From Phaeosaccion multiseriatum (lineage: Eukaryota > Protista > Ochrophyta, other classes): a DNA stretch of 64,000 nucleotides. Below are positions 34,903-63,621 of this stretch, one piece after another (the first letter of the stretch is position 1; each line of letters starts with the position of its first letter). Under the pieces are notes generated by a model, which was not told where the DNA came from, searched no databases, and worked only from the letters and a program-made list of their open reading frames with translations. Position numbers and translations under genes: made by a program. The DNA lies in contig OZ218963.1 of NCBI GenBank assembly GCA_965112735.1, forward strand, positions 2,976,001 to 3,040,000, written 5' to 3'.

Positions 34903-35542
34903 AGAGTGCGAAAAGCAGAGAACATTTAGCACAAGCCTTCATTTTATCTCCCTCCGTCCGAACCCCGTGACACAGGACGGCCCTTCCTTGTTTCACATCA
35001 CAACCCACCCCTATGAGGGAAGGCGGTGTGTGTGTGTACCTGAGGCAGGAGACGAGCTTCTGCACCTTGAATTCCTTGCAGCATTCCATGACGTTGTCGT
35101 TGATGAGCATGTTCTCCCGGTAGAACTCCACTTTGTAGTTCAGGTTGGCAAACAGGCCCCCCACCTACAGCAAAGGCGTGATACAACACGCGAACGAGAT
35201 GCGGGCTTACGATGATCCTCGCAATACCACACAGATAGGCTCTTTCTTTCTTTAGGCTCTTTCTTTCTTTGGTAAATTTTGTTTTGTTTTGAGAAACGCA
35301 GCAACGCAATCTTTCAAGCCCCCACTCACCCTGGCGGCGAGGTGGATGCAGTGAGTAGGTTGATACTTCTCGAAGACCTTCCTGCACGCCTCCTTGTCCT
35401 TCATGTCCCCGTCCTTGGAGCCGAGGAATACGTACTCCTCATTCGCCTGCGCCTCCGTGTCCGAGCTGACAAACTCCTCAATACCCTTGCCCACCAGGCC
35501 GGTTCCACCCGTCACCAACACCTTCCTCTTCACGTCGGCCAT
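32756..35542 (-). CDS. GFUS: GDP-L-fucose synthase (GDP-4-keto-6-deoxymannose epimerase-reductase), multi-exon
   Basis: [93 protein letters not shown] and [14 protein letters not shown] are present. Confidence 0.96.
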
Positions 35543-35604
35543 GTTGTCCTTGCTGTAGGTATTCAACAAGTGTATCTAGCTCGGAGGAGAGAAGAGAGGG
35601 CGCG

Positions 35605-38363
35605 GGGCCCTTGTATGTCAATTAACCCCCTTGTATGTCAATTAACCGCCCTGAATCTCCGAAATTTTCTTGTCATTTTTTTGGGATCGGCTGGGGCACG
35701 TGAGGGAGGAGATGAATACTAGATATACGGACTATCCCAGACGAAGCGCTTGCGCAAGCTTGAGGAAAACACAGTGAACTCGGGATTGGGCAGCTGAGAG
35801 CGTGCTCGCAGCAGCTTTGTGGCAAGAACTAGCGGGTGAGCGGCAAAGGTGCGTTTTTCTCCAACCTTGGTTTCGATAGAGAGAGAGGACGGAGGGGGGT
35901 ATACCCATAGAGATAAGCGGGGTCCAAGACAGAATCTCTTCTCCAGGAGTATACGAAACTTTTCATATGCAACGCATGCTCTTGCGCCTCCAGCTCGTCG
36001 GCAATTTGGCCCCTGAAGTTAGGGTACTCCACCGTCACAGTTGCATGTCTCTGAGACGTGGACGCTGCTCTGTTCTACCGATTTTCAGGGCCCATCAGGG
36101 CGTCATCTGGTCCGCAGGATACGTCTGACGACTCCCGTACCGCCGCTGTCCATGGGCGGAGGGCAAGAGGTCTATGGCAGGTCGTCGCCCGAGGTGGCCG
36201 AAAATGTGAGGGCGCACGAGAGGGGGAGAGGGCGTGAGATGGAAGGCTTTGCCTGGCAGTTACGAGGGGTCCAAGTGGGATCAATATCAATCATATGTAG
36301 CCTGGCTTGTGACAAAGTTTTAGCTTCAAAGGTCATAATCCCATGTGCAAAATCGCATACGTGTACTCCCCTTTCTTTTGCCTTTGAAGGGCCCTTTCTG
36401 TGAGGTCATGAGCGGCCGATCCCACGCCCCGTCAGAGCATCGGTCTTACTTAAGGGGCGTTATACTAACTCCCCTGCCCCCTGTTATTGCGGGACGTGGG
36501 TGGTGGGGCTATCGGGGGGACTTCGACATCTTCCCCCGATGTCACTGCATAGGTGGGGAAGTATGAGGGTGGAGAGGAAAGGGAATGGAACCTTCCCGGC
36601 GGAGTCAAGGGCGACACAAGGTGTGTTGTGGTATCTAGTGTGTGAGCTGTCAGATGTCCAGCTTTCAGCTTCAGCGAGCTTAACAAGACATGGGAAATCA
36701 CCTCGTGTCCACCTCCCTAATTTTGGCCCCTTCGGTTAGGTCATCACGAGGGTCATTACCGGGGCAGGAGAACGACTGCGGCGACCATCCTGCCTCTCTT
36801 CAGGGAGCGAGAAGGTAAGGAGCAAGGGGTTTACGAGCGGCAGTGGCCAGACGAGCGGAGGGAAGAGAAAGAGGCGTCCAGATAGAAGTCAAGCTTATCC
36901 GCCTCGTCGTCCACCCCGAGGGACGCCGTTGCTGCACGATCAGCTGCAGCTCCTCCTGGCTACTGCGGATGAGCGTGCTCGTATTGAAGCCTACCAGCCA
37001 CGAGTGAGAGAAGCTCAATCAAGCAGCAGCTGGACGCGCCATCGGCAGCCGAGGCGGCCATGGGAGCTGAGCCGGAGAAGGGGGGGGGGGGGGGGAGGTA
37101 GCGTGCTGTTGCTGTGGGTGGTGGTGCTCGTCGTGGCACACGATCGAGAAGCGATTGTGACTCAGGGGCGACAGGGCGATGAGCCGCAAGGCCATACTCA
37201 AGTCGCCGACCGCTCTGTATGCAGAGAAAGTGAGGTGGAGGCCGTGGCAGGGGGGTTAGGAGCTGCCAGAGGAGGGCTTGGCGGGCTACAGAGACGGATT
37301 TCGCAGGTAAGACGGAGCCTCGTGTAGCATCTATAGTAGTAGTAGCCGTAGCAGCACTGATAAGGGGAGGAGGGGCAGTGTGTGTACAGTTGGAGCTGCC
37401 CATCCGTGAAATTGGGTTAAAATGACGAATATACACATAGATAGCGTTGTAAATCGCATCCTCGCCAAGGAGAGCATGTAAAGAGTACCAAATCGGCGCA
37501 TGGTCATGAGGTATAGCCTCGCGTTGTATCTGGCCCATATCTATCGTCATACCCTCTCTTCCCCCTCGATCGAGGGTCAGGATGACGACGAAAAGGGGCC
37601 CTTCACACTTGTAAATTCTCTCCCTCGCTCTGTAGCTCCTGAAAGGACACTTCGAGCTGCCCAGCACTCAGCAGACTATGTATTCCTCAAGTCTTCTCAA
37701 GGGTTTCGTATCTCGTGGTCTGCTGGTCGCACACGCTCCTCCCTCTCCTCACCATTTTTGAGGTGAAAACTGCTGCCATAAGTGTTTCCATCTCGCCTCA
37801 CCCCTTCTGCTCCACAGCACCTGCAATCGCACTCTTAGCTGCTCAACGTCGACTTCCATATGTGGGTCGCAGTCTGCTCAAAGCCATTCCTCCCTCATGG
37901 GCTCTTGCTCGCACACGCTCTTCCCCCACTCCCCCCTTGCTTGTTTGAGGCCCAAATTCCCGCCAAAGCAACGGACATTTCAGCTCCACATGTTAGCCCA
38001 CTATCTCCTAAGACCGCGCTCCCAGCTTTACATCGGCTATTTGACTACATAATTCGTATTCAGCCCGAAGATTATCACCTCTTGTGTGAGCTACGCCTCT
38101 CTCTTTCTCCCTTGTTCAGGGGCAAAGATCTCGTCAACATAGGAGCACATTTCACGCACCTTCTAAATCGCTCTATACAGACGCAACAATCAGACTTTCA
38201 GCTGCTCAGCATCTAGAATACTGTCTTTTCCTCAGATCTCCCCAAGCGCTTCGCCTGTGGTGCTCTGTAGCGTGCGTAATACCTCTTTTCCTGAGCCCAC
38301 TCGAATTTTGGTTCCACTGATTTTCTACTGACATTTATCGGGGTTAATTGACATACAAGGGCC
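35605..38363. mobile_element. Foldback-like non-autonomous element, family A, copy 1 (~2.75 kb)
   Basis: The left TIR GGGCCCTTGTATGTCAATTAACCCC (35605-35629, core 20-mer tandemly duplicated) matches the reverse complement at 38340-38363. The arms are diverged inverted homologues and no transposase is recognised. Confidence 0.8.
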
Positions 38364-38379
38364 GATAAATGTCACAGTA

Positions 38380-38768
38380 CTGTGATTTCGCGGTTGAGTG
38401 GCACTTTTTACGCCCAATTACGCCCCATTAATTTTTTTTTACGCCGAATGACGACTTTTTTTACGACGTTTGACGACGTTTGACGACGCTTTAGCCCCCT
38501 ATTTGACGCCCTTTGACGCCCTTTGACGCTCTTTGACGCCCTTTTATCTTAATTCGCCTTACTTTCGTCTAAAAAAAATCACGTAAAAAAAAATCACGGA
38601 AAAGGGCGTCAAAGGGCGTCAAAAGGCGTCAAAGGGCGTCAAATAGGGGGCTAATAAAGCGTCGTCAAACGTCGTCAAACGTCGTCAAAAAAATCGTCAT
38701 TTGGCGTTAAAAAAAATTAATGGGGCGTCATTGGGCGTCAAAAGTGCCACTCAACCGCGAAATCACAG
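38380..38768. mobile_element. Complete TGACG-rich palindromic MITE (family B), 389 bp, TA-flanked
   Basis: It runs TA|CTGTGATTTCGCGGTTGAGTGGCACTTTT...AAAAGTGCCACTCAACCGCGAAATCACAG|TA and is nearly palindromic throughout. TA duplication is typical of Tc1/mariner-group MITEs. Confidence 0.9.
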
Positions 38769-38838
38769 TAGCGTTCGCCAGTTTCAGTTTCCGCTCCTCT
38801 TTCCTTTCCCCCCCCCTTGGCGGTAAACCTATTGGAAA

Positions 38839-39038
38839 CTTAATTCGCCTTAATTTCGTCTAAAAAAAATCACGTAAAAAAAAATCACGGAAAAGGGCGC
38901 AAAAGGGCGTCAAAGGGCGTCAAAAGGCGTCAAAGGGCGTCAAATAGGGGGCTTAAAGCGTCGTCAAACGTCGTCAACCGTCGTCAAAAAAGTCGTCATT
39001 TGGCGTAAAAAAAAATTAATGGGGCGTAATTGGGCGTA
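38839..39038. mobile_element. Internal right-half fragment of MITE family B
   Basis: It is a near copy of 38548-38740 and joins element A copy 2 at a TA dinucleotide. Confidence 0.85.
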
Positions 39039-41655
39039 CCGACTATCCCAGACGAAGCGCTTGCGCAAGCTTGAGGAAAACACAGTGAACTCGGGATTGG
39101 GCAGCTGAGAGCGTGCTCGCAGCAGCTTTGTGGCAAGAACTAGCGGGTGAGCGGCAAAGGTGCGTTTTTCTCCAACCTTGGTTTCGATAGAGAGAGAGGA
39201 CGGAAGGGGGTATACCCATAGAGATCAGCCGTGGGCAAGATAGGATCTCTTCTCCAGGAGTATACGAAACTTTTCATATGCAACGCATGCTCTTCCGCCT
39301 CCAGCTCGTTGGCAATTTTGCCCCTGAAGTTAGGGTACTCCACCTTCACAGTTGCATGTCTCTGAGACGTGGACGCTGCTCTATTCTACCGATTTTCAGG
39401 GCCCATCAGGGCGTCATCTCGTCCGCAGGACACGTCTGATGACCCCCGTACCGCCGCTGTCCATGGGCGGAGGGCAAGAGGTCTATCGCAGGTCGTCACC
39501 CGAGGTGGCCGAAAATGTGAGGGCGCACGAGAGGGGGAGAGGGCGTGAGATGGAAGGCTTCGCCTGGCAGTTACGAGCGGGGCAAGGGGTATTAACACCA
39601 CTCATATATAGCCTGGCTTGTGACCAAGTTTTAGCTTCAAAGGTCATAATCCCATGTGCAAAATCGCATACGTGTACTCCCCTCTCTTTTGCCTTTGAAG
39701 GGCCATTTTTGTGAGGTCATGAGCAGCCGATCCCACGCTCTGTCAGAGCATCGGTCTTGCTTAAGGGGCGTAATACTAACTCCCCTGCCCCCTGTTATTG
39801 CGGGACGTGGGGGTGGGGCTATCGGGGGGACTTCGACATCTTCTCCCGATGTCACTGCACAGGTGGGGAAGTATGAGGGTGGAGAGGAAAGGGAAGGAAC
39901 CTTCCCGGCAGAGTCAAGGGTTACACAAGGTATGTTGTGGCATCTAGTGTGTGAGCTGTCAGATGTCCAACTTTCGGCTTCAGCGAGCTTAACCAGACAT
40001 GGGAAATCACCTCGTGTCCACCTCCCTAATTTTGGCCCCTTGGGTTAGGTCATCACGAGGGTCATTACCGGGGCAGGAGAACGACTGCGGCGACCATCCT
40101 GCCTCTCTTCAGGGAGCGAGAAGGTAAGGAGCAAGGGGTTCACGAGCAGCAGTGGCCAGACGAGCGGGGGGAAGAGAAACAGGCGTCCAGATAGAAGTCA
40201 AGCTTATCCGCCTCGTCGTCCACCCCGGGGGACGCCGTTGCTGCACGATCAGCTGCAGCTCCTCCTGGCTACTGCGGATGAGCGTGCTCGTATTGAAGCC
40301 TACCAGCCACGAGTGAGAGAAGCTCAATCAAGCAGCAGCTGGACGCGCCATCGGCAGCCGAGGCGGCCATGGGAGCTGAGCCGGAGAAAGGGGGGGGGGG
40401 TAGCGTGCTGTTGCTGTGGGTGGTGGTGTTCGTCGTGGCACATGGTCGAGAAGTGATTGTGACTCAGGGGCGACAGGGCGATGAGCCGCAAGGCCATACT
40501 CAAGTCGCTGACCGCCCTGCAGGCAGGGAAAGTGGGGTGGAGGCCGTGGGAGGGGGGGTTGGAGCTGCCAGAGGAGGGCTTGGCGGGCTACCGAGACGGA
40601 TGTCGCAGGTAAGACGGGGCCTCGTGCAGCATCTATAGTAGTAGTAGCCGTAGCACCACCGATGTGGGGAGTAGGGGCAGTGTGTGTACAGTTGGAGCTG
40701 CCCATGTAATAAATTGGATAGAACAGACGAAAAATGCATATATAGCCTTGTAAACCGCAAACTCGCCAAGGAGAGCATGTGAAGTGTACCGAATCGGCGC
40801 ATGGTCATGAGCTATAGCCTAGCGTTGTATCTGGCCCATATCTATCGTCATACTCTCTCTTCCCCCTCGATCGAGGGTCAAAATGACCATGACAAGGGGC
40901 CCTTCACACTTGTAAATTCTCTCCCTCACTCTGTAGCTCCTGAAAGGACTCTTCGAGCCTCCCAGCACTCGGCTGACAATGTATCCCTCAAGTTTTCTCA
41001 AGGGTTTCACATCTCGTGGTCTGCTGGTCGCACACACTCCTCCCTCTCCTCACCATTTTTGAGGTGAAAACTGCTGCCATCAGTGTTTCCATCTCGCCTC
41101 ACCCCTTCCGCTCCACAGCACCTACAGCCGCACTCTTAGCTGCTCAACGTCGACTACCTCATGTGGGCCGCAGTCTCCTCGAAGCCATTCATCCCTCATG
41201 GGCTCTTGCTCGCACACGCTCTTCCCCCACTCCTGCCTTGTTTGAGGCCCAAATTCCCGCCAACGCAACGGACACTTCAGCTCCACATGTTGGCCCACTG
41301 TCACCAAAGACCGCACTCCCGGCTTCTCATCGGCTATTTTACTACACAATCCGTAGTTTGCCCTAAGATCATCACCTCTTGTGTGAGCTACACCTCTCTC
41401 TTTCTCCCTTGTTCAAGGGCAACGATCTCGTCAAACCATCAGCACATTTCACCTCCTAAAGCTCTCTATACAGACGCTGCAATCAGACTTTAAGCTGCTT
41501 AACATCTAAAATGCTGTCTTTATCTCAGATTTCCCGAAGCGCTTCGCCTGTAGTGCCCTATAGCGCGCACAATACCTCTATTGCCAAGCTCACTGTTTTT
41601 CAGGATTTCTACATTGTACTGACATTTATCGGGGTTAATTGACATACAAGGGCCC
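39037..41655. mobile_element. Foldback-like element family A, copy 2 (left ~120 bp missing)
   Basis: It is a direct repeat of 35726-38363 and its first ~160 bp are identical by eye. The right TIR at 41631-41655 is the perfect 25-bp reverse complement of 35605-35629. Confidence 0.85.
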
Positions 41656-41859
41656 GCCAAAACTTTGTTGCCTTACTAATTCTGAACCCTTTCTTCGTCT
41701 CTCCGCCTGACGATAATCCCATGTGGCGTGTGGGTGGGGCCGCCCGACCGGCTGTAGGCATGCACTCCTCGCAGGGCAGGCGGGGCGGAAAAAGATAACA
41801 AGAATCAAGTCTACCCCCGGGGGGGAGAAGGGGGGGGGGGGGGGGGGTTGGTTCGCCTC

Positions 41860-42188: not shown

Positions 42189-42349
42189 CCCCTGACGCAC
42201 TATCGCCCACATTCTCGATAGCGCGCTATCGGTCGCCGGCCGATAGCGGATAGCGGATCGGCTGGCGCCGGCGATAGCGGATAGCACGCCCCCCCCCCCC
42301 AAAGCCGGCTGGCGCCGGCGATAGCGGATAGCGGATAGTGCGTCAGGGG
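42189..42349. mobile_element. Short palindromic MITE, family C
   Basis: The TIR is CCCCTGACGCACTATC...GATAGTGCGTCAGGGG, with internal (gatagcg)n and ggctggcgccggc repeats and flanks ccga / tcga. Confidence 0.85.
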
Positions 42350-49310: not shown

Positions 49311-49568
49311 CCCTGGACAAGGTTATCTGATTACTGATTATATGGCGCCAGCCGGGCCTGATTACTTCGGCCCCTGACATGCTTCTGAGACAGGCCAGCC
49401 CAGAAGCAGGAAGCAGGGTCGCCTTAGAAGCATGTCAGGGGCTCGACCCTGGACAAGGTTACAGTGTGCGCCGGCCATAATCAGTAATCAGGCCGGGTGG
49501 CGCCAATAATCAGTAATCCGGCCGGCTAACGCCGGTCATAATCAGTAATCAGATAACCTTGTCCAGGG
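49311..49568. mobile_element. Palindromic MITE family D (TGATTAC repeats) containing a nested mini-element E (49371-49441) and a second D left end (49447)
   Basis: The outer TIR is CCCTGGACAAGGTTATCTGATTACTGATTAT...ATAATCAGTAATCAGATAACCTTGTCCAGGG. The inner TIR is CCCCTGACATGCTTCT...AGAAGCATGTCAGGGG. Confidence 0.85.
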
Positions 49569-62129: not shown

Positions 62130-63621
62130 ATGGCGGAAGAAGACGTACTTGTGCTCAAGATCCTCCTCGTGGGCGATCCTGGCTGTGGAAAGACGTCATT
62201 AATACGACGCTATGTGGACAACTCCTTCACCGGGAGCGAGCAGCCCACAATCGGCATGGACTTTAGCTTGAAGGAAGTGGTTTTGGCCGGACAGCGCGTG
62301 AAAGTGCAGCTTTGGGACATTGGTGGGCAGGATCACTCGGCTGCCAACCTCAGCAGGGTGAGAGTTTAGAAATCAGAAGAAGAGTTTTTTAAGGTCGTTC
62401 ACCCTCATCCCCCCCCTCCCCCTCTCTCTCTCTCTTGAATTACACCACATGCGTCGTTCTCCATATTTCCAAGGTTTATTTTAGAGGCTCGGTGGGGGCG
62501 TTCATCGTGTATGATATCTCCCGGCCATCGACCTTTGACGGAGCGACGACGTGGAAGGAGGCACTGGACGAAAGAGTCACACTTCCCAACGGAAAGCCCC
62601 TGCCTGTTATCCTCATTGGGAACAAGAAAGACCTGGAGCCTAGTCTCGCGCAGGTTGACAACGAGTACATGGCGAGGTACTTGCTGTCTTCCCCGCCTCT
62701 CTGAAGGCAGAAGTGCTTGGTCTCTCACTCTCTCTTTCCCTCTTCACCTCATGGAGCTGCGACTGTTGATCTGGTCGCGACCTTCCGACCTTTCCCCCCC
62801 TGCCCCTCGCCTGCCGTCTTATTGTCCGTCCCTCCCAGATACACAAAAGAAAAGGGATTTATAGGGTGGAAAGACACAAACGCGAAGGTAGGTGTAGGGG
62901 GTGGATGGGGCATGGGCAGCACTACTCGGCCCCTGACGGGATTCTGAGGGGCGGTGCACAGAATCCGGAATCCGCCCTGCAGAGGCCACCAGAATTCCAA
63001 ATCCCGTTTCCCTGACTTATTATTACGCACTATGACGTCATTCATTGCCTTATTTCTAAGGCGCACCGCCCAGAATCCGGAACCCGCCCTGCAGAGGTAG
63101 AGGTTACCGCAATCCAGAATCCGCCCTGCAGAGGCCATCAGAATCCGGAATCCCCTTTCCCTCAGAATCCCGTCAGGGGCCGACGCTACAGTAGAGACTC
63201 CACCACCTATCAGAGAGACTTGCCACCCCCGAGGAGCCAATATACATACTGTTGTAACTCGACGCGCGAGAGCATGTTGCCTACCCTTCTCCCCTGCAAT
63301 CGATCACCGCCCCCCATCCCCCCCCCCAACGATCCAACAACATCGCATGTAATTCCGTTCACCGATCCTCGCGGTTTTCTTTTTCCACAGGACGAAGAGG
63401 ACCCCGACTTTGGTTTGGCCCTCATGTGGCTGCTGGAGCACGCCTTGGACCACGTCAATATCTTTGGGAAGCGCGTGGGGGGGTCGTCAGCTGCTCGGCT
63501 GGGGGGGGGCAACAAAGGCGGAGGAGGGAAGGCGGGCGAGGACGGCGAGGAAGACATGATCTGGCTCAACGGCAGTAGCGCTTCCGCCTCGCATTCTTTT
63601 ACGGAGGATTGCTGTTCGTAA
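62130..63621 (+). CDS. Rab GTPase, Rab32/38/29-like, multi-exon
   Basis: KILLVGDPGCGKTS, PTIGMDFSLK, VQLWDIGGQD, LPNGKPLPVILIGNKKDL, GFIGWKDTNAK and a C-terminal CCS prenylation motif are present. Confidence 0.9.
62930..63179. mobile_element. Palindromic MITE family F (AGAATCC repeats) inside the last Rab intron
   Basis: The TIR is CCCCTGACGGGATTCTGAGGG...CCCTCAGAATCCCGTCAGGGG, with internal cagaatccggaatccgccctgcagagg repeats and flanks tcgg / ccga. Confidence 0.88.

Follow-up and report, generated by a model that had tools for sequence, protein, structure and literature searches.

The 64,000-nucleotide (nt) stretch of Phaeosaccion multiseriatum DNA considered here, hereafter the window, covers C14:2976001-3040000 of a 67-Mb, 22-contig eukaryotic assembly, which also served as our search space. 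At 35605-41655 it holds a 6-kb block made of two copies, one inside the other, of a family of elements about 2.73 kb in length that, judged by sequence, is a dispersed, non-autonomous, multi-copy DNA transposon. An earlier note on this DNA had described the block as a tandem, foldback-like element, to be compared with Foldback/MuDR types, and had overlooked three properties of the family: its insertions appear to leave no target duplication, a target word lies at a fixed distance outside its ends, and a box with two states is matched at both ends.

Organization of the 6-kb block

Where the earlier note saw perfect 25-bp inverted repeats bounding the block, the inverted ends are real and take the form of a 20-bp sequence, CCCTTGTATGTCAATTAACC, here termed T1. 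It is present as a tandem pair on the forward strand (35608-35627 and 35628-35647) and in inverted orientation at 38342-38361 and 41633-41652. The block contains two bodies, each about 2.7 kb long, which share an orientation and are 92% identical to each other. Copy 1 (35628-38361, forward strand, 2,734 bp) is a full-length, apparently non-autonomous element whose ends align with those of the other copies and which has neither a Pfam match nor a coding signal; its right T1 is the one at 38342-38361 on the reverse strand. It is 97.8% identical to copy L002, its sister in the tree, but only 92.4% identical to copy 2, so that the two cannot have arisen by recent duplication in place. Copy 2 is the older, on a terminal branch of 0.055 as against 0.009 for copy 1.

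The 18 nt that lie past the right T1 of copy 1 (38362-38379, forward strand) read CCGATAA ATGTCACAGTA and are the same as the sequence after T1 in L016: a 7-bp box of type B followed by a second terminal segment, T2. Together with the outer T1 at 35608-35627, an exact copy on the forward strand that abuts the T1 of copy 1, they rebuild an intact B-type left terminus, and the right end of copy 2 is also of B type. Copy 1 thus inserted into copy 2, between T1 and the box, so that the T1 of the older copy is now cut off from the remainder of its left terminus. The final TA of this T2 is the target of an unrelated foldback miniature inverted-repeat transposable element (MITE) of 389 bp (38380-38768, end CTGTGATTTCGCGGTTGAGTGGCAC), which is flanked by a TA duplication at 38378-38379 and 38769-38770. 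Beyond it, 38771-39038 consists of 68 nt shared with the flank of another MITE copy (L068) and then of the MITE's truncated second arm at 38839-39038 (repeat families D6 and D11). The body of copy 2 begins at 39041, corresponding to about position 99 of a full copy and about position 122 of the search query 35605-38363, and runs with its B-type right end to 41652 on the forward strand. The MITE entered the TA within the T2 of copy 2, and a deletion took about 85 bp of copy 2, where MITE-related DNA now lies. The gap in copy 2 comes to about 120 bp, its place taken by the MITE and the DNA related to it.

The block is best described, not as the tandem first proposed, but as a nested pair, the younger copy 1 lying inside the left terminus of copy 2, which is both older and damaged. 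The order of insertion is the B-type copy 2, then copy 1 in its left terminus, and then the TA-targeting MITE in the same terminus. Snap-back filler DNA was considered and rejected as the source of the sequence past the right end of copy 1 and of that between copies L015 and L006, both of which are the interrupted terminus of the host copy.

A dispersed family without coding capacity

With copy 1 as query, a whole-genome search recovered at least 20 copies of full length and 94-97% identity, located on 12 or more contigs in unrelated flanks, together with fragments and relatives at about 70-82% identity. On either side, the boundaries of all copies fall at one and the same base. A genome-wide search for T1 that allowed up to 2 mismatches gave 57 matches, which belong essentially always to this family; the control gave 0. 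The copy-number check that had been proposed therefore bears out the idea of a non-autonomous, multi-copy family with inverted ends, dispersed through the genome and not a local duplication.

In the alignment of 19 copies, the inverted repeat at both ends measures 37 bp and is composed of T1 (20 bp), the 7-bp box and T2 (ATGTCAGTAG), with termini that read CCCTTG...CAAGGG. T1 holds the heptamer TATGTCA, and ATGTCA occurs again 20 bp further inward. The box has two common forms genome-wide, GCCCTGG (A) and CCGATAA (B), in addition to one CCAATAA variant and one degenerate hybrid.

No transposase is recognizable in the element, as had already been noted. There is no stop-free frame of at least 80 aa that stays open throughout the alignment of 19 copies (18 is the most in which any frame is intact), and no excess of third-position changes in any frame of these copies. 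A Pfam search of ten open reading frames (ORFs) of the 2.7-kb element gave no match at E <= 0.1, and an Rfam search of the element gave nothing above noise. Searching the genome by end sequence, with 2-3 mismatches, found no larger or gene-bearing element with these ends, nor was an autonomous partner found in L031, a diverged 3.9-kb relative; exact scans of metagenome and viral collections were blank. An ORF in L031 (6198-6650, reverse strand) that adjoins a solo T1 carries a PCHRV motif, which we take to be typical of O6-methylguanine-DNA methyltransferase.

Two copies are reduced to mini-elements that contain little beyond their two T1 ends. One is of 51 bp (L034:1178-1229, C13:634178-634228). 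The other, of about 64 bp (L036:2137-2200, starting at C1:6154136), retains 4 nt of T2 in addition to box A and a GGGCGGG filler, and is preceded at 14 nt by TAAGTCA. Three copies have a 7-8-bp tandem duplication in nearly the same place within T1 (L004:1500-1545, L019:933-985 and L006:4222-4260); the duplicated pieces are ATTAACCG twice, AATTAACC twice, and GTCAATT twice with a GATATC filler. These duplications may be traces of a former insertion at that place that has since gone. An isolated small palindrome, made of two inverted copies of the left-arm unit described below (about 80-100 bp, 91-96% identity), is found at L035:1157-1336 (C16:610156-610335). The region C1:5.93-6.01 Mb is a tandem array, its unit about 4.4 kb in length, which contains several fragments of the 2.7-kb family as well as A-blocks, a repeat also described below.

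Insertion without target duplication

The earlier note had suggested looking for a target-site duplication and for an autonomous partner, and neither was found, in 17 complete copies and in the end-sequence search of the genome, respectively. No direct repeat of any length was present at the junctions of the 17 copies, where repeats of 2-10 bp were looked for. As a test for a long duplication, we also asked if the 14 nt between target word and element (see below) recur on the far side of the element; no recurrence was seen. On contig C16, the B-type copy L006 sits within the left terminus of its A-type neighbor L015, which it breaks between ...CTACTGACAT and CCAGGGC.... The occupied site reads ...TTTCGATCCTACTGACAT - L006 - CCAGGGCGGTTAAT..., as compared with ...TTTCGGTCCTACTGACATCCAGGGCGGTTAAT... 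in the intact end, with zero gain or loss of nucleotides. The family appears to insert without duplicating its target.

A target word at a fixed distance

The outside flanks of 52 distinct element ends were scanned over 120 nt each. In these 6,240 positions about 0.8 exact matches to TA[AT]GTCA would be expected by chance; 17 of the 52 ends have an exact match at 21-29 nt from the end, and in 11 of the 17 it lies at exactly 21 nt, leaving a spacer of 14 nt. The only other exact matches in the 52 flanks are two, both of which are the T1 of neighboring copies. Near-matches (TAAGGCA, TAAGCTA and TAAGCCA) occupy the corresponding place outside three further ends, one of them in the right flank of copy 2, where TAAGGCA, with one mismatch to TA[AT]GTCA, lies on the reverse strand at 41669-41675, 16 nt outside the end. 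The word reads towards the element and never occurs on both sides of one element. Relative to contig and strand, it is on the left of the element in about 10 cases and on the right in about 6. The spacers show no sequence relationship to one another, which makes the word part of the target rather than of the element. A reading of the flanking word as a 5' splice site (GTAAGT) was rejected, the required G being present in only 8 of 19 cases.

The ends of the family carry the same ruler. The point 14 nt downstream of TATGTCA in T1 is the boundary between box and T2; L006 entered L015 exactly at this boundary, and L021 adjoins the T2 of another copy at the same point.

Six or seven insertions, including the mini-element L036, are preceded by a common sequence, the A-block (...GGTGATTCCTATTAAGTCAATAAA). 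Its 17-mer core has 411 genomic matches at up to 2 mismatches, against 4 for a control, and it is where a longer repeat terminates on its 3' side. In L042 and L050 this repeat can be followed for 345 nt, over which the two are 72% alike, the similarity stopping about 14-16 nt after TAAGTCA. We rejected the possibility that the A-block is part of the element, as in at least 9 sites the heptamer alone is shared. The A-block, ...CTTTCAGTTTCTTAGGTGATTCCTATTAAGTCAATAAA, is often preceded by a (CA)n run, and the 5' extent of its parent repeat is variable (L038-L053 and genome-wide). It is a hot spot abutted by several families, namely the 2.7-kb family, the foldback MITE, a GGGCGATAGC MITE and a Crypton-like element of 3.6 kb.

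Matched boxes and mosaic interiors

All 16 complete copies other than copy 1 have the same box at both ends (10 AA and 6 BB), where random pairing of boxes would give about 47% mixed copies. Copy 1 is the sole mixed copy, with an A-like left end (box GCCCTGA, T2 deleted) and a B right end. The interiors do not follow this division. A tree of interior sequences does not separate AA from BB copies, and forcing the BB copies together costs 207 log-likelihood units (approximately unbiased test, p-AU 9e-5). Within a single copy the nearest relative differs by segment; L003 (AA) and L004 (BB), for example, are only 4 sites apart over positions 38-250. This pattern indicates that the copies are mosaics and that recombination among them has been frequent. 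Because interiors are mosaic and yet separate insertions have only matched ends, we infer that transposition would require matched ends, through either two enzyme specificities or a step that pairs the ends together.

Subterminal repeats and pairing of the arms

A periodicity of about 182 bp in the right arm, proposed previously, was recovered by nhmmer. With unit R2 (37804-37985) as query, R1 was retrieved at E 4e-9, R3 at E 6.5e-4 and R4 at E 2e-3. Profile matches place the four-unit array at 37622-38343 on the forward strand (R1 at 37622, R2 at 37804, R3 at 37986 and R4 at 38168), with matches at consensus positions 2003, 2185, 2372 and 2540, that is, with unit starts 182, 187 and 168 bp apart. 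The left arm matched R2 once, in inverted orientation (consensus 204-109, E 3.5e-4); the profile match for this unit is at consensus 107-198 (35734-35825, reverse strand). A profile of all five units found no further copy in the left arm, all other matches having E > 0.1. The right arm is thus an array of four units and the left arm a single unit, rather than the two inverted arrays that had been described. The same off-diagonal offsets, 181-185 bp, are seen in L033, a 70% relative, so the period of about 182 bp is old.

Homology between the arms in inverted orientation had been reported to continue beyond the terminal repeats. Local alignment of the left arm to the reverse-complemented right arm gave one segment above shuffled sequences, consensus 118-175 against 2563-2620, with a score of 36 (shuffle mean 24.2, standard deviation 2.8, maximum 33; z about 4). 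Inverted homology beyond the ends is confirmed for this one segment; the second reported match, 36236 with 37794, scores 24, the mean best score of shuffles. With regard to the proposed long imperfect hairpin, the terminal 260 nt of both ends pair far above shuffles (z -11, or z -7 without the inverted ends); for the arms taken to a length of 1 kb this is not so (z -2). With arms this asymmetric in their units and pairing only over about 260 nt, the label foldback-like does not suit the element. The GC-rich core of about 600 bp is present as stated (58-65% GC over 36800-37400), and GC skew is mirrored between the arms.

A model for transposition

In the picture that we favor, the family depends for its movement on a trans-acting enzyme encoded elsewhere. 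Such an enzyme would recognize each end by the heptamer TATGTCA within T1 and cut exactly at CCCTTG...CAAGGG; both ends would then be joined at one target position, as a blunt join, so that nothing is duplicated. The target would be chosen by binding of a look-alike heptamer, TA[AT]GTCA, with insertion about 14 bp downstream. The resemblance of target heptamer to end heptamer could explain why copies land next to family ends, or within them, and also beside the repeat that bears the word. Taken together with this general picture, a DDE-type cut-and-paste transposase acting with zero stagger seems to us about an even prospect. We chose this class because the ends are symmetric and the orientation free, because Spy elements show that insertion without duplication is possible for such enzymes (PMC4122938), and because the internally deleted mini-elements L034 and L036 and the mosaic copies are compatible with repair of a double-strand break left by excision. 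The fuller proposal, that one DNA-binding specificity serves both the ends and target capture, that blunt joining takes place 14 bp from a look-alike heptamer, that same-box ends are required, and that such a system is of an undescribed eukaryotic kind, is a tentative one and somewhat doubtful.

Several observations weigh against this picture. The sole comparison with an empty site is the nested case internal to the family, and not an allele or a paralogue. Some junctions have extra G's beside CCC for which we have no explanation. The ruler is inexact, as spacers of 15-20 nt occur and that of copy 1 in the window is 7 nt, and 5 or more copies are without an exact target word on either side. 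Zero-stagger joining is rare for DDE enzymes, and since the end-sequence search of the genome found neither a transposase nor an autonomous partner, the enzyme class is a guess.

The absence of a target duplication, the site-directed insertion and the shared hot spot would be accounted for by the main rival, a tyrosine recombinase of Crypton type. In that case the family would be excised as a circle, with its joined ends forming a lox-like palindrome (...TTGACATACAAGGG/CCCTTGTATGTCAA...), and would re-enter by site-specific recombination beside recombinase-binding words, with no duplication. A candidate source of such an enzyme is active in the same genome: a 3.6-kb element (L072:1924-5539, C14:1838923-1842538) with a 727-aa ORF, present in at least 32 copies at 98-100% identity. 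Its protein has no Pfam match, and resembles clusters with GCR1_C, NDC10_II and phage-integrase domains (score 0.90). Palindromes of the form GTGGGGC-N4/5-GCCCCAC lie subterminally, at 37 and 19 nt from its ends; its left end has TATGTCT 14 nt from the subterminal palindrome, and at two or more independent loci an A-block directly follows its right end. A shared overlap of 6-8 bp is normally needed by tyrosine recombinases, however, and the 2.7-kb family has no sequence conserved where the crossover would take place. The similarities among the left end of the 3.6-kb element, the A-block and T1 are weak (shuffle p 0.2, 0.02 and 0.04), and no recombinase element carries the family's ends. The protein's predicted domain resemblance fits the domain make-up of Cryptons, whose described members have 4-6-bp terminal direct repeats not seen in the 2.7-kb family (PMC3212892). 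We consider mobilization by a Crypton-type enzyme unlikely, and the possible link between the two elements serves as a lead only.

The foldback or MuDR-type reading that follows the earlier note, in which both arms are arrays of nucleosome-sized units, inverted to each other, and the period serves to position nucleosomes or to phase transposase sites, draws on the four right-arm units, the single inverted unit on the left, the pairing of the terminal 260 nt and the mirrored GC skew. It is very improbable in view of a left arm that has no array, 1-kb arms that pair no better than shuffles, a second reported arm match at chance level, the lack of a 9-11-bp duplication and a block that is nested, not tandem. 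Spread by segmental duplication or ectopic recombination, with the inverted ends incidental, might be suspected from the mosaic copies, which speak for frequent recombination. That explanation is hardly credible for copies that have common end bases on both sides, lie in unrelated flanks on many contigs, and share in those flanks just a short target word at a fixed distance. Of these possibilities, cut-and-paste movement in trans remains the one that we prefer.

The neighboring gene and other small elements

Copy 2, the older insertion, entered near TAAGGCA and upstream of an epimerase-family gene. The first exon of this gene lies at 35252-35569 on the reverse strand of the window and matches the NAD-dependent epimerase/dehydratase family (Pfam PF01370, E 3e-7); we read it as encoding a GDP-fucose-synthase-like protein. 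The nested pair begins about 65 bp upstream of the probable ATG, a location that would be in the promoter or the 5' untranslated region. A comparison with introners may be made here. Introner copies lie within genes and are spliced out by signals in their ends; T1 contains GTATGT, its complement ends in AG, and the copy in the window sits upstream of the start codon.

The foldback MITE found in copy 2 belongs to a family of about 80 copies, with 164 matches to its 25-bp end and sizes of 375-424 bp, mostly 396-406 bp. Its arms are arrays of a 10-bp unit (TTTGACGCCC / TTTGACGACG), and in the window copy the 116-nt arms are 95% complementary. TA is present on both sides in 15 of 16 sampled copies, the other, L069, having tt on the left. 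The family looks like a young MITE of Tc1/mariner type (Stowaway-like). Four further small MITEs in the window (42189-42349, 49311-49568, 49371-49441 and 62930-63179) have CCC(C)TG...CAGGG(G) cores. We rejected kinship of these with the 2.7-kb family, because their outer bases are of the TCGG...CCGA type and place them in a different family.

Comparison with known transposable elements

Elements of the IS30 and IS3 families target their own inverted repeats, and those of the IS1111 group target the ends of other transposons. The 2.7-kb family is like them in inserting at a set position beside or inside sequence that resembles a transposon end. They differ from it in being prokaryotic, in encoding their own enzyme, and in mostly making 2-3-bp duplications or inserting in a single orientation. 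Inverted ends and subterminal repeats recall foldback and MuDR elements, from which the family is set apart by short, asymmetric arms, the lack of a duplication and a 2-kb interior of unique sequence. Mutator/MuDR elements make 9-11-bp duplications and have long inverted ends (about 100-200 bp), whereas those of the 2.7-kb family are 37 bp long and accompanied by no duplication, so the MuDR assignment falls. PiggyBac elements duplicate TTAA and have CCC...GGG termini; the termini are common to the 2.7-kb family, but no flank is TTAA. Helitrons are known by ends of the form 5'-TC...CTRR-3', by a hairpin on the 3' side, by the choice of a site between A and T, and by the lack of inverted ends, and the ends and flanks of the 2.7-kb family do not have this form.

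The closest parallels are found in two groups of eukaryotic elements. Spy elements, of the PHIS superfamily, have inverted ends, no target duplication, precise insertion and mostly non-autonomous copies, are known from invertebrates, and insert between AAA and TTT with termini GGANNNNG (Han et al. 2014, PMC4122938). The 2.7-kb family shares the first three properties and has non-autonomous copies, but its flanks have neither AAA/TTT nor a conserved junction, its target word is 14 bp away, and its termini are CCCTTG...CAAGGG. Cryptons have no inverted ends, carry 4-6-bp terminal direct repeats, and encode a tyrosine recombinase (Kojima and Jurka 2011, PMC3212892). They resemble the 2.7-kb family in the lack of a target duplication, in having non-autonomous derivatives and in their occurrence in stramenopiles, and an active family is found in the same genome on the same hot-spot repeat. 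The 2.7-kb family differs in its 37-bp inverted ends, in the absence of terminal direct repeats, and in having no recombinase partner with matching ends.

On present evidence the 2.7-kb family would work most like a non-autonomous cut-and-paste element, with the generic features of such elements save a target duplication of fixed length. To our knowledge, eukaryotic cut-and-paste elements without a target duplication are rare, and targeting at a fixed distance is found mainly in bacterial elements and a few retrotransposons. Annotation programs that depend on target duplications will miss this family. A family with both features offers a simple system for studying how a transposition enzyme measures its target, and its two-state box raises the question of how the two ends of an element are checked against each other.

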